DNA from: Bispira polyomma
Lineage: Eukaryota
DNA: 64,000 bases
Assembly (NCBI GenBank): GCA_965649765.1
Contig: OZ287750.1
Coordinates: forward strand, 100,006,001-100,070,000
Reading direction: 5' to 3'
This document shows positions 23,151 through 52,425 of the stretch, one piece after another. Under the pieces are notes generated by a model. It worked only from the letters and a program-made list of their open reading frames with translations, did not search any database and was not told the origin of the DNA. The position numbers were made by a program, and so were the translations under genes. Within the stretch, counting starts at the first letter, position 1; every line of letters begins with the position of its first letter.

Positions 23151-26100
23151 TATATTATATGGCTGTTTTAATCACTTTGCAAAGAAATATTAAACTTGTA
23201 AATGGTATTTGCATATAAAAATGATTAAAACGGTCACTAAAGACATATTTTGAGGCTGCCATAGTGGATTCCCAGGGTTAAAACATTTAACTGAGGTATA
23301 ATTTACAGGTTACTCATTTGTGTGTTTACGTTACTAAAGCCTTAAGGAAACATTTGGCAAATCTTAAATATACCAATCAGCTAGCCTGGGACATTGTCAA
23401 AGAGAGCTTTTTGTAACTCTTCTTGCAACTTTCAAAACACCAACCTAGTGCTCTCACAACATATTCTTTTAACTTAGTGAGATTTCAGGTAAAGCTAATC
23501 AGTCAGGGATTAGCTTGCAACACTGTCAGCAAAATTTAGTGTTCTGTAACACTTCCTGTAACTTTGCCCACCGCACACTTATCGTCAAGAGAAGCTAATC
23601 AGTCAACGGCTAGGCTGGGACACTGTCATGCAATTTTTTCAACTCCCACCCAGTGCTGTCAAAAAAAATTTACACTGTGAAAAAGGTTTAAATAAATTTT
23701 TATTTGTTTTTCATAAGTGATTTTGACAATTCCATGTACTTGGTTTATTTGTTACATGTCATTTTGCAACCAATAGCCATTTCACCACGGCCATTTTGGG
23801 ACCTTTGTAGTTCTAGAAATAATTCACCACTTGATTTAGTTTCTGACACATTTTTACTGAATGAAATACAACAAATAGTGGATACACATTATTTAAATGC
23901 CGAATTTGTTTAATGTGTACACAACATACTTTGTTTCAGTGCATCAAAAAGCCTATAGGACATACAATAGTCTAAAACTATTTGCCAAGTAGAGAACCCA
24001 GGCTGGGTGTAAATTGCAAATCAGATGAGACCTCAATAGAGGTAATATACATGTATTTCACACATTTCTACCTTAAATATTTATTAACTGAATATTAACT
24101 GAGATATCTTAAGTAACAGAAATATCTTGTAGATAAAACTACAAACAAAACAAATATAAATGCTTGAATAATTAAAGTATTAATAAGTTATATAAGGCAG
24201 CGACCCCAGCGTAGGGGTTTACAGTTTTGGGGTACCAGTCTTTTCTAAAATGTATAGCTTCATTGACTGCAGATTTCCCTATACAAGGATGTGCCATTTT
24301 AATGTCCGCCTTTTAAAAACAATAGCCGTACACAGAACATCACTTTGAAACAAATGTTCAAAATTTCTACAGTTTTACGTTGTTCCACACTGTTGTAGAG
24401 AATTTTAATCTGTTTTGTCTGTTTTATATCATTACTGAATTTTATCATGCCTTCGTCAGTGAATTGTTCTAAATGTTTGGGCCAGTCGGGGCTGAATGTC
24501 AGTTAATGGTTAATGCTACTACTGCTGACATTGACCAAGGTGAGGAACTCAGAGATGCTGGTCTGGCTCAGGATGTGGGGCTGAGTACTGTGTCAAATCA
24601 AATACTTTTACAGCTCCAGTCCATGAGCCAGATAATGGAAAAAATGGACTAGCATGTGCAACTGAGGCGGCGTTGGCAGCGGATGGAAACAAAAAACAGG
24701 CCAGTAATTTGACTTCTAGCAATAGCTCTGTAAACAATACGGCTGAAATAGCTACACCTGTCAATGAGGTACAAAATGTTATACCTCATTGATGTTATAA
24801 ATAACACAAAAATTCAAAGCCAGGTAGAACTTCGGTTGGCTAATTTGAAGCGCCTCAACGAAACCCCCAGTCGGGGTAAGCTTAAGTCTCAGAGGGGGGA
24901 GGGGTAGATGTCATTAAACGTGTTGTCGAATGGCCACAAAATCGTGTCCTTTTCGAGCTAAGCCCACATACGACGACTTGTCTATGAGCCAATGGGTATG
25001 TCGGTTCACCAGGATTATTCAGGATGAGAAATCAAATTCTGTTAGGGAACTAATGCTCCAATACATGTCCAAATTTATGGAGGACTCGGAGGATTTCTCG
25101 TGGGAGGCAGTGAAGGCTTCTTACACTGTTGTGCTCATGCACATGAAAATGAACAAGCTTTTGTGGTCCGACGTGGATAAATTAGACCGTTTACGAAGGG
25201 CTCACGCTCAGAAACAGGTGTCCAGTAGTAGTACTACTCCTGCTAATGCCAGTTGAGGCAGTAAAACCAGTGGCATGGCCAAACAAAGTGCAAATTGCAA
25301 TTTTTTCCAAGATGGGTCCTGTAAGTTCCCCAGTAGTCACAAGATAGGGAATATGTATTTTAAGCATGTCTGTGAAACTTGTGGGGGGAACCCGTAAAAC
25401 TAATGCATGTACCAGAAAATAGGTAAACGTTGACACAGTGGGCAATTACCATTTGGGTAGTATGTTTTATAATTCAAAATTTCAGGAACAGCATTTACTG
25501 GAAAAATCAGTTGTAAATAAAATGTTGTTGTATTACAGAGGTAAACAGACTCGCTGCACGTACAGCGACGCTGTTTCAGTGGGAAGTAAAATATGTCAAA
25601 ATAAAAGTGTTGGTGAACAAGTCCTGAAAAGTGACCCAAAGCCTTTCAATGCAGTAGAACTCCATAAGCAAACAAGGTGTCAAAACACCTCAGTGAAAAC
25701 TGTCTAAAGGTGTCGAAAATGGGTGTCCATGTCCTGGGTGAAGCCCCCTTTGTCTCGGCCACATGAAACAAAATAAATACTTTTGAGTCGAGACAAAGGC
25801 CTTCAACCAAAGGCGTGTCAAACAGAATAAACCCATGAACGAGATAGGAGGTCAGATTGTGTTGCATAATAGATTTCTTCCACTCTGCCAAACCACTGTT
25901 GAACCCCGGCAGCAATGGGGAGGGGGGGGGGGGGGGGGGGGTAACAGAACAGGGTGTTGATATTGTGCCTAAACAAAAAGCCTGTGTTAACTTTGTGTTG
26001 CACACGGCTGGTATCAAAAAATCAAATTCAATTAGTGTCACCAAAGATGATGGGGACAAATACTCTCTCGAATTTATAACAAAAACGTAACAAGCGAGAA

Positions 26101-26387
26101 CTGTTGGGCAAAGCTCAATTAAATGATACCTACATTCAATGGAAAGCCCAAAATGAAGTTGAATGTGGCTTTACGCCCCTGTCCAATTTAGGTTGTAAAA
26201 TCTGTGACTTTGGTAACACTGACCACAAATTCATAATTTTTGAAATGCACAACAAATTAAGACAAGATGGTAGACAAAATTTTCAGGGCCTCCAGCTTGT
26301 TGTTGAGTCGCAGTTAAATGCTGACAAGTGGGACAAATACCTTGAGAACTACTGTTACTGGCAACTCCTTTTGCTCATTAAGTATCT

Positions 26388-26877
26388 AAAGCAAACATAA
26401 AGTTGATAAGAGACAGGCTAGTTATAAACAACAAGCCAAAGTCGGACATTTTTTAGAAGAATCCTTTAGATCCCACCATCTCTACAGGGGAGTCCATAAA
26501 TTATGATGTTATCCACCATTCCAACCCAGTTAGCATCAAAGGGAGTACATTCCAGGGACATTACTATCCCATACATTGCATGGAAGAAGCGGTTCAAGCT
26601 TTGAGAGCATTACATCTAAACAAGTCGTTGTGTAAAAGTCACCACTTCGTCTACGCCTACAATTACTGCGATACTGATGGTCAACTGATGGTCGGGATAC
26701 TCAGATGATGGTGAGTGGAAAGCAAGCAGTTTATTGAAGGGAATGCTTGACGCTAGCAAATGTTCTGATGGAATATTGATGGTGACCCGCATACACGACG
26801 GACCAAATCTTGGTAAGCAAAGATTTCACCTGCTAGAAAGAGTTGCTAAAGAAGTTCTAGACAATGCCTCTGTATAA
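26388..26877 (+). pseudogene. LINE ORF1 C-terminus fused to an IMPACT/Yih1 (UPF0029) domain
   Basis: KANIKLIRDRLVINN, then KGSTFQGH, HHFVYAY, GYSDDGE, LMVTR, GPNLGKQRF; one stop and one +1 frameshift near 26695. Confidence 0.85.
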
Positions 26878-27643
26878 ACGTCACTCTCTAGACATTAGAA
26901 ACCATTATATAATAAGTTTTGAACATTCTAGTAACAATAAAAACTAAGTTTTCTGTTAACAGGACATATTAAATACATTCATTACATGTTTAAAAGCCTG
27001 CTTGACAGACTGTTTATTTTTCAAAATACCATGTTTATGATGACATTTGCGTTTGTGAATATAATCGATAGGGAAAACCAGTTCTGCTGTATTTTTTTAT
27101 TATAATCAGGTTTGCTGTGATGATTTTGATTTGATGAGTTAGCTTACAACTTTTTCTTATAGCGTAACCACAGCTACCAAAAAATACATGTATGTCAGAT
27201 GATGTTGATTCTTGATTCGGTATGCTAGCATAGACTATTATTTTCCCCAGTTCTACGTGTATAAACGTCACTCTCTAAACATTAGAAACCATTATATAAT
27301 AAGTTTGAACATTCTAGGAACAATAATAACTAGTTTCTCTGTTAAAAGGATATATTAAATACATTCATTACATATTTAAAAGCCTGCCTGACAGACTGTT
27401 TATTTTTTCAAAATACCATGTTTATGATAACATTTGTGTTTGTGAATATAATCGATAGACAAAACCAGTTCTGCTGTATATTTTATTATAATCAGGTTTG
27501 CTGTGATGATTTTGATTTGATGAGTTAGCTTACAACTTTTTCTTATAGTGTAACCACAGCTACCAAAAAATACATGTATGTCAGATGATGTTGATTCTTG
27601 ATTCAGTATGCTAGCATAGACTACTATTTTCCCCAGTTGTACA
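26871..27643. repeat. Tandem duplication of about 387 bp in the LINE inter-ORF spacer
   Basis: Near-identical units start TGTATAAACGTCACTCTCTA at 26871 and 27258. Confidence 0.97.
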
Positions 27644-28399
27644 TGAATGGCAGATGATATATATACTTAAGAATCAATATTGCAATTTTTATGTTTTAAA
27701 TTTAATTAACTTCTAAACATTGTTAAATTTTGAGTTGGTATGTGAACATACGACTGTGTTGGTGTTTTTTTTTTTTGTTGGTTTTTTTTTTTCGAGTTGT
27801 ACATGTAAATAGTTTGCCGTTAATATGTTATTGAGAATAAATATTGAATCATGGACAGCTAGTAAAACAGCACTAATTTGTAATAACTTACAAATTGGAT
27901 TTTTAAAAATTTTATTGTCACATATGGTGGATACCTCATGACATAAACTATTGAACATGTGAAATGTACATAAGCTCTCTCAATAGTTCACAGTGTCACT
28001 TTTTTATTTTTTGTAGAGTATTTTATTTTGATAAAACATTCATTCTGTAAAGAACGCCTTAATTAAGTTATGTTAGTTTTTTTTTTCTTCTTTAGCATCC
28101 TTAGGTTAAGAAATATGTGTTTGTTTTTCAGAAATGCATTAAAAAGGTGTTACCTTCTTGCAATTATTATTAAAATGAAAGGTATAATTTTATTTTTTTC
28201 AATAGATATGTGGTCATCTTTTGTTAGTTGTAGCAAGTCAATAAATATTAAATATAAGGTACTAATGTGGTCTTCAAAGTCATCAATCATTGAAAAAATA
28301 ATGGTTAAAATAATTAATCGTCTACTCCAGTCAAAACAAAATATTTTGATGCTGCTTATTCTAGAGAGTGCTGTGTGTTATTACCGCAACTTTTTCCGA

Positions 28400-31300
28400 A
28401 ATAATATTAGGGTGTTATCTGCAAACTGTCAAGGATTAAGAAACAAACATAAAAGGATAGATGTTTTGGCATACTTCAAAGAAAGAGAAGCTGACATAAT
28501 TTGTCTCCAAGATACACATTGGATCAAAAGTGACTTGAGTCTGTGGAATGGCAATTGTTATATTCATGGGTCTAAAACCAATGCGCGTGGTGTAGCAATT
28601 CTTTTAAAAAGTAATTTTGAATATACTGTATTGTCAAGTGAACAAGACACAAAAGGAAACTTCCTTTGTTTACCTTAAAACTTAGCTCTATGACAATAGC
28701 TCTTATTACAATATATGCCCCAAATAAGGACACTCCACTTTTCTTTACAAAACTGCAGAATGTTGTGCAGAGTAATAATTTCGATCACTGCATAATATGT
28801 GGTGATTATAACTTAGTGATCAATCCTGCACTTGATACATACGGATATAAACATATAAATAATTCAAAAGCTAGGCTAACAGTACTTAATATGATGACCG
28901 ATTTTGATTTTCTAGATATTTATAGGCAACTACACCGAAACAATCGCCGATATACATGGAGGAAGAGAACTCCCCTAAAACAGGCCAGGCTTGATTACTT
29001 TTTGGTGTCCAAGAATATGTTAGATATAATAATTAAATGCGAAATTAAACCTGGTTATAGGTCAGACCACTCCATTATAGAATTAGAAATTGTGTTGAAC
29101 CATTTTAAGGTGGGAAAGGGGATTTGGAAATTTAATAATAGCCTACTTAAAAACATTGATTATTTAAATTTAATAAACAAAGTAATAAAAGAGGAAATTT
29201 TAAATTATGCGATACCTGTATATGACTTAAAATTTTTTGAAAATAATTACAATGATATTAATTTCATGATAGACAATGATCTCTTTCTTGAGGTACTGTT
29301 GCTCAGGACAAGAGGGGAAACAATTAAATTTACAAGTGCTGTAAAAAAATTAAATGCCTCTAAAGAAAAAGATCTGATGAAAGATATTGAGTATTTGGAA
29401 ACAAATATAGACTCCCAAAATTGTAATTTACAACTGCTATCAGATAAAAAAAGCCGAATTGGAATACATTAGAGAAAATAAAATGAAAGGGGCACAGGTT
29501 AGAGCTAGAATACAGTGGCTAAATGAGGGAGAAAAACCCTCCAAGCTATTCTGTAATGTAGAATCGAGAAATTATGTTGAAAAAACAAAATTACAATTAG
29601 ATGATGGTTAAACAATTTATGAGCAAAAGGAATTGCTACACCACGTCAAAACTTATTATTCCAATTTATTCAGCAACCGAGACATGTATCTTAATGTAGA
29701 AAGCTTTGATTCTTTGAAAGAGGTTCAATCAGAAAAAGTCACTTGGGTGGTTCTGTATCTGTAGGTGAATTGCAAACAGTTTTAAAAAAGATGAAACATA
29801 ACAAAACGCCAGGTTCTATATCTGTAGCTGAATTGCAAACAGTTTTAAATAAGATGAAACATAACAAAACGCCAGGAATAGATGGTCTTACTGTGGAATT
29901 TTTAATAGTTTCCTGGGGAATGCTAAAGTTTTTTATGGCTAGAGCAATCAACTGTGGTTTTGAAAAAGGTTCAATGTCAATAACTTTGCGCCAATGCATT
30001 ATAGTCTGCTTACCAAAAGGAAACAAGAACAGAAATTTTATGAAGAACTGGCGACCTATTTCACTAATTTCTGTAATTTACAAACTAGCTTCGGGTGTAA
30101 TAGCTCAAAGATTAAAAACAGTTTTAGATCTTATTATATCAAAATCACAATCTGGCTTTGTACCAGGGAGGCAGATAAGTGATAGTACCAGATTAATTTA
30201 TGATATAATGAATTCAGCAGAAGTAAAAAATCTCCCTCGACTTTTAATGCTTCTAGATTTTGAAAAGGCATTTGACTCCATTTCTTGGATATTTCTGTAT
30301 AAAACTCTAGCAAGGAATTTATCAAGTGGGTAAAACTCTTTAACACCAACATCAAAGCACATGTACTTCCATGTGGTACTTTATCTGAAGAAATTTCTAT
30401 TGAAAGGGGTTGCAGACAAGGTGACCAACTTTCACCATATTTATTTTTGATAGGGGCTGAAGTACTGTCTTCATTACTAAAAGTAAATCCAAATATAAAA
30501 GGTTTTAAGTTGAGAAACGAAGAGATCAAATTAACACAGTTTGCAGATGACACAACCCTTATACTTGATGGATCACAGCGCTCTTTAGAGACAGCACTTA
30601 ATATACTAGAAATATTTGGAAATTGTTCTGGCTTAAAAATGAACATGGAAAAAACAAAGGTGATCTGGATTGGTCAGAAATGTTTCTCTAAGGAAAAATT
30701 AAAAATAGAACACACCCTACAATGGGGCAACTCAGAATTTTCTATGTTAGGATTAAATTTTTCAACCAATTTAGGTGATATTCCAATCATAAACTACTCT
30801 GAGGCTTTAGAAAAAATTAAGAAGGACATGGTAAATTGGAGAAATAGATATCTCACACCTTTTGGGAGAATATCACTTATTAAAACCAAATTTTTGTCAA
30901 AACTGATACACCTCTTCATTACCTTGCCTGCACCATTAGGTATTTTGAAACAGATAAATAAAATGATGTTTATATTTATATGGAATCATAAACCTGATAA
31001 GGTTAAACAAAAAACCTTATGTGGGGATTATTCAAAATGGGGTTTGAAAATGATTAATATATTCCATTTTGAAAAGGCATTAAAAATAGCTTGGATACGA
31101 AAGACAATCTATCAACCAGAAGTAGGATGGAACAAGGTATTACACGAATCAAATAGTAAAGTAAAAAAATTATCTGGACTGGGTGGAGAATTAAATTCAA
31201 TCTACTCGAAAACATTGAAAAACGAGTTTTGGACCATTATTTTTGGATACTGGAATGACTTCTGTTCAAAAAATCAACCCTCATCAAATGATGAAATTTC

Positions 31301-32040
31301 AGATTCATGTGTATCGTATAATAGTCAAGTATCAAAATGTATTCTATATTACCCAACTTGGTACAAAAAGGGAATAAGCCTAGTGGGTGATATAATAAAT
31401 GCAGAAGGAACTGTAATTAGTCATGCAGAATTTAATAAAAAATATAACATTTCTACAAATATTTTAGACTATCACAGGTTAAAATTCTCGGTTGAGAAGT
31501 TCCTGATCAATATGGGCAGTAAAACTAAATTTCACACTTGATATCAAGGTTTGGGAAAATATTTTTAAGGCCAGTTTCAAGTCCATTTCAGATAACACAT
31601 TGATATGGTTTCAATATAAAATACTTTTTAACATTTTGGATACCAATCAATATTTGCATAAGATAAACGTAATTGATTCAAACTTTTGCAATTTTTGTAA
31701 GCGACATCCAGATTCTATTTACCACCTTTTCACTCAGTGCACTTATGTTGACAAATTGTGGCAAAATATATTAGATTGGATCTGGAAAAAGTTGGCTCTT
31801 AAAATAGAGCTAAGCGATGCTAGAAAAATTTTAGGGTATGAAGAAATGGACTTAAATTTCTGGCCACTGAACTTTTTGCTACTAGTACCAAGGTATTACA
31901 TATTTTGGTGCTCAAAGAAGAAATTTCAATTGAACATATATTTCCTTCAGAAAAAATTTAAAAATATATTTTTAGAACAAAAACTTTTGTCGAAAGTAAA
32001 TCAAACAGAACAAAAATTTGACAAGAAATGGGAAGTATGA
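28400..32040 (+). pseudogene. LINE ORF2: APE endonuclease, RT and C-terminal CCHC (frameshifted)
   Basis: VLSANCQGL, LQDTH, GDYN, RLDYFL, SDH; KTPGIDG, NWRPISL, LDFEKAFD, QFADD; CNFC..HLFTQC. Confidence 0.96.
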
Positions 32041-33262
32041 GAAAACCTAATAGTGTAAAAAATTGTTGTTTTTTGCTGAACTTCTGCATAAGATGACCAG
32101 TGAGAAAGTGAGCATTATAAAAAAAAAAAATTATTAAAAAACATGTTTTTTTTTGTTTTTTTTTGTGATTTGGTAACCAGCATCGTAGTATAAACTGTTG
32201 TAAAAAATTTATTGCATTTATTAAGATGTGCTTACTGTATATTTGTAATATTTTCTTATTTTTTTTTTATACAACAAACAGAAATAAAAGTATAAAAAAA
32301 AAGGTATCGCTTCCTGTTTGTATGTAGGGACAACATAAATCAGTCAGAGAATGCCAACCAAAGTTCTTCGAGTTGTTTTCCTGAACACGTGGAAATGTAT
32401 TTAAAAGAAGAATGCCACTTTGGGGCCATTCTAGGTCCTTTCACCAGCCCACCGATTAAAAACCTGCACTGTTCGCCGATGATGACTCAGGAGAAATCCA
32501 GCTCTGCTAATAGGTTTGTTATTATCGATTTAAGCTGGCCACATGGTCAGTCAGTTAATGCTGGGGCCTCTCCCACTTGCTATCTAGCCACAGAATTCAT
32601 ATTGTCTTATCCTTCCATAGATAAAATTACCAGTGAGGTCAGTAAGTTGGGCAGAGGTTGCCATATATATATAAGGTGGACGTAAGTCGTGCATTCAGGC
32701 ACGTCCCCATTGACCCCGGAAATATTAAATTTTTGTGCTTAAAATGGAAGGGCTTCTATGTAGATAAATGCCTTCCCTTTGGCCACCAGAACGGGTCCAC
32801 TATTTTTCAAAGACTCTCGGACGCGGTCAGATATATTATAAGGGCAGAGGGCCAAAACATTCACAATTACATGGATGATTTTTTGGCCATTAATTTGCCC
32901 AGCAAAATTGGGCCTAGTTATAACCGGTTCCAGGCGCTATTACAAAAACTTGGTCTCATGGTTAGTAGTAAAAAATTAGTGCCCCCCCAGCACACGTGTT
33001 GTGTGCTTGGGTATCCTCATTGATACTGAAACGTTCTCTAATTCTATACCTGAAGACAAATTATGTGAAATTCGAGACAAATGTCTGTCTTGGCAGGAAA
33101 AAACTCATTATACTAAAAAAGAGTTACAGTCGTTGCTAGGCTCCCTTCTGTATGTGGCTAAATGCATTAAGTATGCACGAGTTTGCCTTAACAGGATGCT
33201 CCAATTACTGCGTGATAATTATGGAAAAACCAGATTTCTCGTTACAAAGGAATTTAGGAAAG

Positions 33263-33490
33263 GACAAACTTGTTCAATTGTTATTTACGTGGACAGGATT
33301 GTGGTCAGGCCGGATTCGTTTCATTATTGTATTATTGTATGAACTATTAAGAGTATCTCAGTTGACTGTAATTGTATAATTGTTATTTTAATTGTTAAAT
33401 AAATTTGTTAAGTGAAATTTTTTGTCTTTTCCTGTTACAACTTGAAAGCAACCGGTAATTGCTACCGTGCTTGCTCCCGTGACCATAACA
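33263..33490 (+). mobile_element. Probable LTR 3' fragment replacing part of the YR-element RNase H
   Basis: Non-coding AT-rich insert with AATAAA ending in ATAACA; pol homology stops at EFRK and resumes at WTSRSDIE. Confidence 0.5.
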
Positions 33491-33714
33491 GTGGACCAGT
33501 CGGTCCGATATAGAAATTGTGGTCATTCACATTATGGGCGTCAAAAACAAAAATGCAGACTTATTGTCACATTGGGATAAAACCAGTAATAATGACCAGT
33601 TGTTGGCAGAATTGGCAGGTCCAGTGAAATGACTGCAAGCAGATGCCAATCGGCTTTGGGTAGACCCTACAATATAACAAGAATATAATTAAGAATAACA
33701 TAATTGTGTTTCAG

Positions 33715-34677
33715 GTATGCACCCTGCAGAGTCACTGCTTGTAGGCGCATTCATTATCCATTTGCTGCCTCAACTGCCAGGGCTTATGACAGGATGTTTA
33801 GGCTGTTTGTTTCCTTTGGGACGATTATGAATTGGCCCCCATCTCAGGTGAATGTATTTAAACTCTTATGGTTTCTTGAGTTCTTAAATTATAATTCCAT
33901 GTCAGCCTCACAAATTGATAACAACCTGTCAGCCGTGAAAGCTAAGTGCAATCTGTTTCACATTAATGTAGAGTGTTTTTCTGACCCGATAATATCATAT
34001 TTTAGTCGGGCTCTAGCTTTACACAAACCATTGCAAGCTAAACTTAAAAGCCTGTTCGATATTCCCTTGATCAAGGCCCTTGTGTTAAATTGTGATAGCA
34101 CATATATGGGCCAGATATGCAAGGCAATATGTCTCACCAGTTTTTTCAGGTTTTACGTCTGTCAAACTTGTGCCCACACTCAGTGGCGGCTTTTTCCCTT
34201 CTAAAGCATTTGGCTAGAGGTGATTTTAAAACTTGGCTATGTTACTCTATTAATAAAGTGGTCTAAAACCATGCAGACGAACAATGCCATTAAGCTTTTG
34301 ACAATTCCAGTGATCCCTTTATCCAGCCTGTGCCCAGTAGCTGCCTTAAGGAATGTCCTCGCCTTAACACCCCCTGGCTCCAACATGCCTCTTTTTCAAT
34401 ATAAAAAGGGCTGCTCCTGGGAGGAGATGACGGACACCCATGTAAGGCATCTTTGAAGAATGTTTTACAGCTTCTGGGTTGCCAGCACAACAATCTTACT
34501 TTCCATGCTTTCCGGCATTCAGGTGCCATGTTTGCCTTTAATAATAATGTCAACATACAGGACATTCAACGACATGGCACCTAGACGTCGGATTGTGTCT
34601 AGAGGTACATAACCGATTCGGCCCATGCTGTCTCTCCGTTTGCAGACTCCTTTAGATTGTCGCTACAGCACTACTAG
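33715..34677 (+). pseudogene. Tyrosine recombinase (degenerate)
   Basis: STARAY, KWSKTMQ, FHAFRHSG; acceptor ttgtgtttcag at 33714; stops and frameshifts. Confidence 0.9.
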
Positions 34678-49249: not shown

Positions 49250-52200
49250 TTTCAAATTGTCTAAGCCTAATAACCTTTCATCAGAATCAACCACATCACC
49301 AAGAGTATTGATGCCTCTTTTTGCCCAATTGGGGAAGAAAACCTTGGTGTTAGAGATGTGTTTCTTAAACCCAATTATACTACTCCAAATGTCACTGTTA
49401 GACTTAACCATTTGTATTCTGCACAGGTTTTTCCGATTTTCGAAACGGTTTTTCAGATGGTTTAATTTGTCTAAAAAATGTAAGACACCAGTTATATTTC
49501 AATTAATCTTTTTCTTCATCTTTTAACTTTTTTTTTCAAATATGATACTTAATTGGTTCCCCTCTAATTCTTAAAAAAGAGTTCTTAAAACATGTCACTA
49601 TAAACTAACAATTGGATATCATTGCTGTTTTGTAAATAACCTAATTATATAAATAGGTAAAGCTTATTTAATTTTTTCTTCATTAATAACTTTATTCATT
49701 AAATATAGGTAATCTTTATTTTGCAATCATATGTTCCACACACCTTTTCCACACTTAAAGTTGTTCAAACTTATGTGCATCTCAATCAAGATTGGTCAGA
49801 TCGATAGCTACCAGTAATACTAAATTTTTTAATAATATCCATCATAGTACTGGTTACCAAGAAGTAATCTTGCCTTGCTTGCTTGAAAGGATTTTTGTCT
49901 CTCCAAAAAAGAACCAGTCTGTTTATAATTGTTCTAGATTTTGGGTTATTAATATGTACATATTATAGTAGTCTTTAATTTTTTCAAAACATTTAGGATT
50001 GTCTTGATTTGGTGCATATAGCCAATTTAAATTGTGCCACATTAGATTAGTAATTGTAACCAATTGCCATCTGTATTTTTATTCACTTTAATAACTTTGT
50101 ATTCAAAGTTATTATTTAACACCACAAGAATTGGTTCTAAGACCATGTATGTAACAATCTGGTCACTAAATGTGTGTCATTTTAAGTAAGATGTGTATCT
50201 TATAGAAATACTATGTTTGCACCTGTGTCCTTCAAAAATTTAGGTACATCTATTCTTTTCTCACAAGTAGGAAGACCTTGACAGTTTGCAGACAACACGT
50301 TAATTCCATTGGCTATATCGGTCATTTTGTATTACTGAAATGTTTTTGCAGACAATGACATATTAAAAGGTGTTATGTTTCTAAAAAGAGCCATCAAGTA
50401 CATCAAAAGGAATACTTCTGAAATAAATCATGTTACACATCTCAAATAGCTGATGAAAAAAGGATTTTTTTTCAACTCTAAAAACAAATCTTTTTATACA
50501 GTTCAAATAATACATTTAAACACATTGTACAAACAACTTATATACATTCATAATTTATGGTAAAAAAAAACATTACGTAAATAGGAAAGGAAACAAAACA
50601 TTTAAGAGAATTGCAAAATTATCATTTTAAACTCGGTTGTAGCATTTAATAAGAAAAAAGTAAGATTTGATTGAAAAGGTTTGTAAACACAATGAACATT
50701 TCATACATTACACACAAATGTAGTTTTCAAATAAAATTTTAAAAATGTAATCTTTTAAATTTTCAGTTTGGTAGCATGTATAGCCTTTGTATACTGTAAC
50801 ACTATGACACTGTCAACAAACAAAGTAAATAAGAAGACACAATAACAGTTGTTTTACTATATATTCAATGATAATAGTACTTATAGGAGGAACTGGTAAA
50901 ACAAAAACGGATGTAATATAGGTTGTGTTATTGGTAAGACAACACATGAGATCTACACAATATATGTCACAACTGTAAATATATTTGATCTAATAATGAA
51001 TCTGTGAGGTAAATCATATTTAAAATTAGCATTATTTTTTTCCCTATTTGATTAAGCTGAATGAATACAGTTATTATCCACCTTTTTGTTTTATAATAAG
51101 GTACAATTGTTTTTAATAAGGTACAATTTTTTTTAAAATCTAACAGACGTTTCTAAAATTATGAGTGGTTTTCAAAGTGAGATGGAACTCTGTTATAACA
51201 AGCCCCCGTTTGGATTGATACTTGAATATTTATAAAATTAAAAAGGTATTTTTAGGCAAAGAAATTTGACAATATTTAACAACATCTTATAAAGCCAACA
51301 GTTTGCTAGTAGTGACTTTTCATAATGAATTGAAATTATGCATAAAAATATTTATTCAACCTAATTATACATAATCACTTGCTACTTAATAGCATACAAT
51401 AGCTTTTTCTTTTGCGAACAGACCAATACAAATTATATAGATATTAAGATATAATTTTAAAAGATCCATACAGACAATGAGTATGATAAATACAACTATA
51501 TATGACTACTTGCTCTTCAAAAAATTACAACACAAAACTATTATTTATAGTATTGGTTAGACATGATCAACACTGTCTGTTCAAAATACTTCCAGGTACC
51601 ATATGAAAACATAATTGGAGATGTATATTAATTATAATCCAGTTGTCTTTTTTAAATATTAAAGTCTAAACTTGTACAGGTAAACCATAACTAAAGCAAG
51701 TACTGACCAGACTAGCAACACACTAAATGATGACAGAAATTTGAACACTAATAAACTATAAAGACAAGAATATCATGCCATAGTAGCAAATATATATCAA
51801 TGTTGTTTATATATAAATTTTTAAGTACAGTTTAAATGTCAAATAGTCTAAACATTAAGGTGTTGTCAACATAAAAAGGTTAATTTTGCACTGTGGCAAT
51901 AAATTTTCATTAAATTATGTTCAGACTACTTAAAGTCTATTTTGCACATCACTTGCTTATTTATTGTTTATTGTATCAGTGACCGCCCCAGTCTCACAGT
52001 ACCCCCACTCGACTTACACAAATTGTGCCACATTGAAAATACTCCCTCCAGTTTTGAGATTACATCTATTGCCGTAGTTATAATTAGGTCTAACCTTTTC
52101 TTACGGATATTTGGTCCCTTATGACACCTAGATACTGCCAGAAAAATGTTGAGGAGGGGTTTATCTTGGAGCAAATTTCGTAATATCTGGCTTGACCCAA

Positions 52201-52425
52201 CTTTCCCATCATGACTATAGCCAGTGGTAACTGTGGTCCCTTGATCTGAGCATCCGTCTTCATCCAGGGAATAGACGTAGCTAATGTGATGTGCATTTGA
52301 TAATCTGGGTTCTGCAGTAGTGCTGCGTGAGCAGCTTGTGCCTCAGAGATAGAATTTATTCTATGTACATGACCTTAAAATCAATATCCTTTCCACATCG
52401 TAGGACCAGGTCCGGAGAAATTATG
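49250..52425 (-). mobile_element. Second, older L1/Tx1-like LINE (IMPACT-domain ORF1 end, spacer, internally deleted ORF2)
   Basis: ORF2 starts at 50325: MTDIANGINVLSANCQGL..KRIDV..FL*DTH; C-terminal WAKRGINTLGDVV; RT core missing. Confidence 0.8.
51968..52425 (-). pseudogene. IMPACT/UPF0029 domain remnant (LINE ORF1 end)
   Basis: KGY*F*GHVHRINSISEA; NAHHISYVY; GYSHDGK; NIFLAVSRCHKGPNIRKKRLDLI. Confidence 0.78.

Follow-up and report, generated by a model that had tools for sequence, protein, structure and literature searches.

The protein encoded by the first open reading frame (ORF1) of long interspersed nuclear elements (LINEs) is known to be modular, with RNA recognition motifs (RRMs), zinc knuckles, PHD and esterase domains and, recently, NADAR among its parts; the ancient domain of IMPACT is not among the reported modules that we found. 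Accessory esterase or PHD domains have been described in CR1/L2-type ORF1s (PMC3905857, PMC4120745), and NADAR in the ORF1 of oyster Tx1 LINEs (PMC12477816). Yih1 and IMPACT, host proteins that carry the ancient domain, associate with ribosomes, actin and Gcn1, and Yih1 inhibits Gcn2 through competition for Gcn1 binding (PMC4503747). In the ancient domain, whose function is described as unknown, the invariant features lie together on a single face; the part of Yih1 that suffices to bind ribosomes, actin and Gcn1 overlaps the linker and is not confined to the ancient domain (PMC4503747). Here we analyse a stretch of 64,000 nucleotides of the Bispira polyomma assembly GCA_965649765.1 (contig OZ287750.1, positions 100,006,001 to 100,070,000, forward strand), referred to as the window, in which an original prediction made from the letters alone had placed an IMPACT/Yih1-like domain at the end of a LINE ORF1. 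Window positions 26385-32302 are a dead, 5′-truncated copy of an L1/Tx1-type LINE. In its intact relatives, ORF1 ends in this domain, which belongs to the family UPF0029.

Three-frame translation of window positions 25900-27000 yields the tail of an L1-type ORF1 followed by the UPF0029/IMPACT ancient domain at 26388-26877. The frame that starts at 26388 contains the tail KANIKLIRDRLVINN, runs into a TAG codon at 26454-26456 and continues into IHHSNPVSIKGSTFQGH, with the motifs GSTFQGH and HHFVYAY; past a shift near 26686-26692, the next frame carries GYSDDGE, LMVTR, GPNLGKQRF and AKEVL and reaches a stop at 26875-26877. In Pfam searches, 26457-26705 matched positions 1-43 of the PF01205 profile (E 9.5e-4, 19.6 bits) and 26692-26874 matched positions 50-107 (E 2.4e-7, 31.1 bits; cut-off 27 bits). 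Because the two half-matches are colinear and adjacent, chance is no reasonable explanation for them. Both lesions are private to the window copy: the TAG at 26454 is GAG in all other aligned copies except L011, which has GAC, and the frameshift is a 1-bp insertion that the alignment shows to be absent in 10/10 sister copies. The single in-frame stop and the frameshift of the original prediction are thereby located, at 26454 and at about 26686-26692. A phmmer search with the first half-domain of the window against Protein Data Bank (PDB) sequences returned chance matches only (flocculin, E 0.4); a family profile, not a single half-domain, was needed to reach homologues among PDB sequences.

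Three sister copies (L035, L036 and L032) hold an unbroken ORF1 of 408 aa, which in each case occupies locus positions 1015-2238 on the minus strand. These are natural sequences, with no consensus building and no frame repair. PF01205 is the sole significant Pfam match in this protein, spanning residues 297-403 and the full profile (1-107; E 1.5e-15, 57.6 bits against a cut-off of 27). Transposase_22 (PF02994), the Pfam model of L1-type ORF1 proteins, gave no match in the 408-aa ORF1 even at E <= 1, and ESM Atlas clusters named Transposase_22 are weak leads only, with scores of 0.79-0.81. An AlphaFold2 model computed from 21 aligned relatives reaches a mean predicted local distance difference test score (pLDDT) of 81, with values mostly of 83-95 in the UPF0029 region. 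It is laid out as a disordered N-terminus, a helix at 49-123, two alpha/beta domains and a C-terminal alpha/beta domain, and the ORF1 tail motif corresponds to strands 250-259 of the second of the L1-type folded parts, the C-terminal domain (CTD). Foldseek aligns model residues of about 100-290 with the human L1 ORF1p trimer 2yko (E 4e-7, template modelling (TM) score 0.66 by target, 191 columns). The C-terminal part aligns with yeast Yih1 6bqi, Thermus thermophilus TTHA1053 2cve and Escherichia coli YigZ 1vi7 at E 6e-6, 4.6e-4 and 1.6e-3, respectively, the superpositions having a root mean square deviation of 2.9-4.5 over about 120 columns. The protein is predicted to be ordered as a disordered N-terminus, a long coiled coil, RRM, CTD and C-terminal UPF0029. 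Its modelled fold and its position make it an L1-type ORF1p, which the Pfam sequence model does not recognize.

A linker of about 30 residues attaches the UPF0029 domain immediately beyond the point at which related ORF1s end: relatives without the domain terminate 6-12 residues after the conserved CTD tail motif. These end points, together with the match of the modelled N-terminal part to the human L1 ORF1p trimer, bear out the earlier reading of the upstream segment as an L1-type ORF1 tail. By hidden Markov model, motifs and fold alike, the appended domain is a member of the UPF0029/Impact_N family (PF01205), and the original prediction that its motif order is that of the IMPACT/Yih1/YigZ ancient domain agrees with both the colinear PF01205 halves and the Foldseek matches to 6bqi, 2cve and 1vi7.

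We assessed whether the domain is maintained by comparing ORF1s at several depths. In a set of 21 ORF1s sharing 25-58% identity with the window family, S299, F301, H332, Y335, A336, D353, G388 and F392 are invariant; in this alignment, the invariant columns of the C-terminal part of ORF1 are the UPF0029 signature residues. Among 163 full-length fusions, the signature motifs (S.F..H, H..YAY, DDGE, R, G..LG..RF) are kept in 126-160, and H332, D352, D353, R380 and R391 in 154-160. For the ratio of nonsynonymous to synonymous substitution rates (dN/dS), near-identical pairs offer too few differences and distant pairs have saturated dS; the ratio was taken from copies at 10-15% divergence. For the domain, comparison with four copies of the window family that had diverged independently (dS 0.13-0.23) gave a dN/dS of 0.33-0.42, a value that decayed copies push upward. 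In distant pairs, where dS is saturated, dN of the domain is 0.26-0.40, less than in the remainder of ORF1; no other part of the protein evolves as slowly. These values indicate that the UPF0029 domain is under purifying selection.

The domain also tracks the remainder of the protein. Pairwise divergences of the N-terminal part and the domain are correlated (Mantel r 0.58, with 0/999 permutations as high). In a tree of the coiled-coil end, RRM and CTD of 63 ORF1s (47 with the domain, 15 without and one with NADAR), a single change of state fits the presence of the domain, at a Shimodaira-Hasegawa-like approximate likelihood ratio test (SH-aLRT) value of 97. On this unrooted tree, the change may be one gain or one loss. 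Collectively, the comparisons indicate that UPF0029 is a lasting in-frame module of ORF1, inherited with the rest of the protein.

The arrangement extends well beyond the family of the window. A six-frame PF01205 search of the genome gave at least 427 candidate matches; all of the 150 that were scored (150/150) lie above the cut-off, and 39 candidates, by count from the table of matches, fall in stop-free frames of at least 350 codons. At least five distinct families, besides close variants, are represented among the fetched loci, and the other families score 87-96 bits against PF01205. Six loci of one family, with frames of 510 or 513 codons, look nearly identical at the ends that were compared, which suggests recent transposition. 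In each family with open downstream sequence, an ORF2 with an endonuclease of the apurinic/apyrimidinic (APE) type starts 0.7-1 kb downstream, and an ORF2 in the same orientation follows the domain-bearing ORF1 wherever linkage was examined. In public data, a word-index search returned 18 full-length relatives with PF01205 at 28-59% identity, and the contigs of two relatives carry ORF1 (Impact_N) followed by ORF2 with endonuclease and reverse transcriptase (RT), one of them (L049) also with zf-RVT. When 1.84 billion cluster representatives were searched with a profile, 1,201 proteins reached E <= 1e-30; of the best 150 of these, almost all cover the RRM/CTD part as well as the UPF0029 part. 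Impact_N is also present in the nearest ESM Atlas clusters, the few with recorded taxonomy being mostly molluscan; the nearest named ORF1 relatives, which are without the domain, are those of the bivalves Mya arenaria and Dreissena polymorpha.

The central claim of the original prediction, that a LINE lineage carries the domain as a permanent ORF1 module, is thus upheld from several sides: by the three intact 408-aa sister frames, by at least four other families in the genome with the same arrangement and an APE-type ORF2, by unrelated assemblies in which ORF1-IMPACT likewise has ORF2 downstream, by purifying selection at a dN/dS of 0.33-0.42 and by the one change on the ORF1 tree. We regard the ORF1 architecture of the window LINE, and selection upon it, as close to certain.

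We then considered where the domain came from. A profile of the ORF1 family matches Yih1 133-251, the whole ancient domain, at E 7.9e-28 and the bacterial homologues at 1.4e-5 (2cve) and 6.6e-4 (1vi7/YigZ). A profile-profile comparison by hhalign with fungal IMPACT (P0092 and its 120 best relatives, used for this comparison only) reached 99.7% probability over 124 columns of the ancient domain only, and nothing aligned to either the RWD domain or the linker of fungal IMPACT. As Yih1 and fungal IMPACT are far closer than the bacterial homologues, the domain is of eukaryotic IMPACT type. No ORF1 scanned with Pfam matched RWD (PF05773); the original prediction had seen no RWD either, and Pfam and hhalign agree with it. 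Like IMPACT, the ORF1 protein has its C-terminus immediately behind the domain. An ancestral LINE may have acquired the 3′ part of a host IMPACT message; such capture of a processed message would account for the absence of introns in the domain. As to the LINE itself, the ORF2 of a relative finds human L1 ORF2p as its best match among solved structures (E 2e-26; R2, 1.5e-17), and APE endonuclease, RT and zf-RVT domains are present in both the window ORF2 and the L049 ORF2 by Pfam. Tx1 is the L1-like clade reported in bivalves (PMC10294476).

The conservation of the domain suggested that its biochemical activity has been retained. Since the near-invariant loop residues H332, D352, D353, R380 and R391 are common to all UPF0029 proteins and the LINE domain retains the invariant face, it has most likely kept the ancestral ligand-binding activity. 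If the coiled coil trimerizes ORF1p as it does in L1 ORF1p, three ancient domains would be displayed on the LINE ribonucleoprotein (RNP). We propose that the domain could hold ORF1p on the translation apparatus as this decodes the RNA of the element itself; retention at the ribosome would help cis-loading of the RNP and perhaps aid translation of ORF2, which lies 0.55-1.5 kb downstream. A role at the ribosome or in translation, drawn by analogy with Yih1 and IMPACT, is a tentative idea that we consider possible rather than probable. The fuller scenario, in which a large and old LINE lineage recruited the ancient domain as a translation module, with trimeric display, engagement of the ribosome or of a conserved ligand in the translation or stress machinery, cis-loading and ORF2 translation all in place, is more doubtful still.

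Alternatively, the domain may be an enzymatic or ligand-processing accessory, serving counter-defence or RNA or nucleotide processing on the RNP, with the ORF1 C-terminus acting as a slot for small catalytic domains. The ribosomal S5 domain 2-like fold occurs in both enzymes and RNA-binding proteins, and the conserved His, Asp-Asp, Arg and Arg, kept in 154-160 of the 163 sequences, resemble a polar active or binding site. In a related ORF1 of 449 aa (P0094), which groups with the IMPACT-less ORF1s on the ORF1 tree, a NADAR domain (PF08719, E 1.3e-38) occupies residues 298-447, the position that the IMPACT domain takes elsewhere. This protein suggests an exchangeable C-terminal slot for accessory domains in Tx1-like ORF1s; for oyster Tx1 LINEs, too, NADAR domains in ORF1 have been mentioned (PMC12477816). 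However, P0094 is the single NADAR example examined behind the slot idea, and catalytic activity has never been shown for any UPF0029 protein (PMC4503747). We consider an enzymatic accessory a possibility that falls short of being probable.

The domain could instead damp GCN2 and eIF2alpha phosphorylation in LINE-expressing cells, as host IMPACT does. The contact between Yih1 and Gcn1 is made by the RWD domain, and LINE ORF1 has no RWD by Pfam or hhalign; competition for GCN1 is unlikely because this domain is absent. The LINE domain is of eukaryotic IMPACT type and overexpressed host IMPACT/Yih1 does inhibit GCN2, but Yih1 does so by competing for Gcn1 (PMC4503747). Damping of GCN2 is the least likely of the earlier functional ideas, and we hold it to be improbable. 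That the domain is a neutral passenger, or that the ORF1-IMPACT genes are a domesticated host family, is very improbable: LINEs do carry transduced host fragments, and most relatives are left unannotated by their source or called only 'hypothetical protein', but ORF1s that share only 25-58% identity still have the domain, with invariant signature residues. Its dN/dS is below 0.45, in distant pairs no part of ORF1 evolves more slowly, and it is always followed by a same-orientation ORF2. The LINE family has 5′-truncated copies and poly(A) tails, and the six 510/513-codon loci, nearly identical at their compared ends, suggest recent transposition.

Several points weigh against the account of an ORF1-IMPACT LINE whose domain anchors ORF1p to translation. 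A search of RNA data found the ORF1 in no RNA sequencing run. Ribosome binding by the ancient domain is an extrapolation, as the binding region of Yih1 overlaps the linker. The putative donor lineage and the proposed route through a captured mRNA were drawn from a comparison with Yih1, fungal IMPACT and the bacterial homologues only. The assignment of the LINE to the Tx1 clade, as against another L1-like clade, is tentative, and we infer it from zf-RVT in ORF2, the bivalve Tx1 report and the NADAR domains of oyster Tx1. The ORF1 tree came from a quick search over 153 columns, and its domain-less ORF1s are those returned by similarity search. Taking these together with the evidence in its favour, we put the probability that the account as a whole (a dead LINE copy, the ORF1-IMPACT architecture and the proposal of a translation anchor) is the best explanation at about 75%.

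The copy in the window and its insertion site were examined by a DNA search of the source genome (1.035 Gb, 75 contigs), which gave about 30 related copies at 81-97% identity (Table 1). Compared with these roughly 30 copies, homology ends at 32302 on the 3′ side. In the alignment of 5′ parts, sister copies extend upstream of 26385, where the window copy stops; 26385 was accordingly rejected as the true 5′ end of the family and is a truncation point. The window copy retains the last 163 ORF1 codons only, with tblastn aligning from ORF1 residue 246. Of the placement of ORF1 in the original prediction, the in-frame remnant stands, but it is 5′-truncated at 26385 and is not a whole ORF1. Across the genome, the family has more than 500 candidate 3′ ends and about 15 candidate 5′ ends, the imbalance typically left by 5′ truncation of LINEs. 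The ORF2 of the window copy is broken into at least six frames.

The LINE interrupts the frame of an older retroelement. This host-element frame picks up again at 32305 and leads into an RT domain at 32658-33020 (RVT_1, E 3e-11). The element had been described as a LINE bounded by a target-site duplication (TSD). The LINE is there, from 26385 to 32302 with the host ORF resuming at 32305, but the TSD is doubtful: the flanking direct repeat is at best the 4-bp GTAT at 26382-26385 and 32304-32307. The in-frame resumption of the host ORF is stronger evidence for a clean insertion than this possible TSD. The older retroelement, at 24930-26384 and 32305-34204, has a gag-like ORF, an RT and a recombinase-like-looking ORF at 33703-34204, and is perhaps a DIRS-like element with a tyrosine recombinase. 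Inside it, upstream of the LINE insertion, there is a stretch of about 23 G at 25920-25942.

Table 1 Features of the LINE copy and its surroundings in window coordinates, and ORF1-IMPACT families of the genome
Feature	Position	Strand	Evidence or remark
Older retroelement ORF, part upstream of the LINE	26104..26384	+	Open frame; resumes in frame at 32305
LINE copy (ORF1 remnant, spacer, broken ORF2, poly(A))	26385..32302	+	Homology limits against sister copies; Pfam for ORF2
C-terminal tail of L1-type ORF1 CTD (KANIKLIRDRLVINN)	26388..26432	+	Matches the 'KL..DKL.I(N/D)' tail conserved in all relatives
In-frame TAG stop	26454..26456	+	Sister-copy alignment
UPF0029 N-terminal half (GSTFQGH, HHFVYAY)	26538..26672	+	PF01205 1-43; 92% identity to intact sister ORF1
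Frameshifting 1-bp insertion inside the domain	26686..26692	+	Sister-copy alignment
UPF0029 C-terminal half (DDGE, VTR, G..LG..RF), next frame	26695..26859	+	PF01205 50-107; 98% identity to intact sister ORF1
ORF1 stop TAA, directly after the domain	26875..26877	+	Translation, sister-copy alignment
ORF1-ORF2 spacer, about 1.5 kb	26878..28414	+	Self and cross matches
ORF2 APE-type endonuclease, split over two frames	28415..29079	+	PF03372, PF14529
ORF2 reverse transcriptase, split over two frames	30022..30758	+	PF00078, E 2.8e-16 and 2.9e-7
ORF2 C-terminal zinc-binding domain (zf-RVT)	31609..31761	+	PF13966, E 6e-8
Short poly(A) tail, LINE 3′ end	32294..32302	+	Sequence; homology to other copies ends here
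Family with 513-codon open frames (510 codons at one locus)	Six loci		Nearly identical at compared ends
Family with open frames of 532 and 458 codons			
Family with open frames of 458 and 378 codons			
Family with an open frame of 362 codons			
Family of the window, 408-aa ORF1			

The spacer between the ORFs has features of its own. In the window copy it contains a tandem duplication of about 390 bp, with units at 26871-27262 and 27258-27648, that begins in the last ORF1 codons. Sister copies carry one unit or two (L002 and L003 versus L010-L013), making the duplication a subfamily marker. A non-coding gap of about 0.55-1.5 kb separates ORF1 from ORF2 in every ORF1-IMPACT LINE examined (the window copy, L053, L078, L070, L069, L080, L049 and L050).

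Two further occurrences of UPF0029 were noted. On the minus strand of the window, 52055-52342 holds a second segment, diverged and decayed and part of another LINE family, with 29-33% identity to ORF1-IMPACT proteins and the motifs H..Y.Y, HDG, VSR and GPN..K.R still recognizable. A protein of 569 aa (P0200) carries three UPF0029 stretches in tandem (Pfam E 3.5e-66); the domain has apparently been multiplied within this one protein.

UPF0029 is conserved from bacteria to humans, and here it has been kept long-term under selection on an RNA-binding, presumably ribosome-proximal transposon protein. In this RWD-free setting, what the ancient domain does can be told apart from GCN1 binding, with RNP formation and retrotransposition as a direct read-out. 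The fusion constitutes a new ORF1 type for LINE classification. With hundreds of copies per genome, such elements will also inflate UPF0029/IMPACT gene counts when mollusc genomes are annotated automatically.

As in L1-type (type II) ORF1p, represented by the human structure 2yko, coiled coil, RRM and CTD follow one another in that order, and ORF1 precedes an ORF2 that encodes APE endonuclease, RT and a zinc-binding domain. The ORF1 described here differs in the extra folded domain of about 110 residues after the CTD and in a sequence similarity too low for Pfam Transposase_22. The inter-ORF spacer of human L1 measures a few tens of bases, in contrast to 0.55-1.5 kb here.

With host IMPACT/Yih1, the LINE domain shares the eukaryote-type motifs GSTF, H..YAY and DDGE and, in most families, R-W-(F/Y)-GG..(L/V)GP.RF, the last of which has diverged in the window family (IHDGPNLGKQRF). 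IMPACT/Yih1 combines RWD with the ancient domain (6bqi), whereas the LINE ORF1 has neither RWD nor the charged linker; it is therefore not an IMPACT orthologue, and GCN1 binding is not to be assumed for it. The LINE domain is instead fused to an RNA-binding, presumably trimeric transposon protein, and it occurs in hundreds of intronless copies inside LINEs rather than in a single-copy host gene. The bacterial proteins YigZ and TTHA1053 (1vi7, 2cve) have the same fold and signature residues and are much more distant in sequence. Bacterial YigZ-type proteins carry a C-terminal DUF1949 domain; in ten ORF1-IMPACT proteins scanned with Pfam, no second domain follows UPF0029.

A search of the full-text literature found no published link of UPF0029, IMPACT or YigZ to a LINE ORF1, and Repbase-type entries may contain such elements uncommented. 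The closest parallels are the ORF1s with esterase, PHD or NADAR domains. They embody the same principle, in which a globular domain derived from a host or a bacterium is kept on an RNA-binding ORF1, and the LINEs described here apply it with a different domain.

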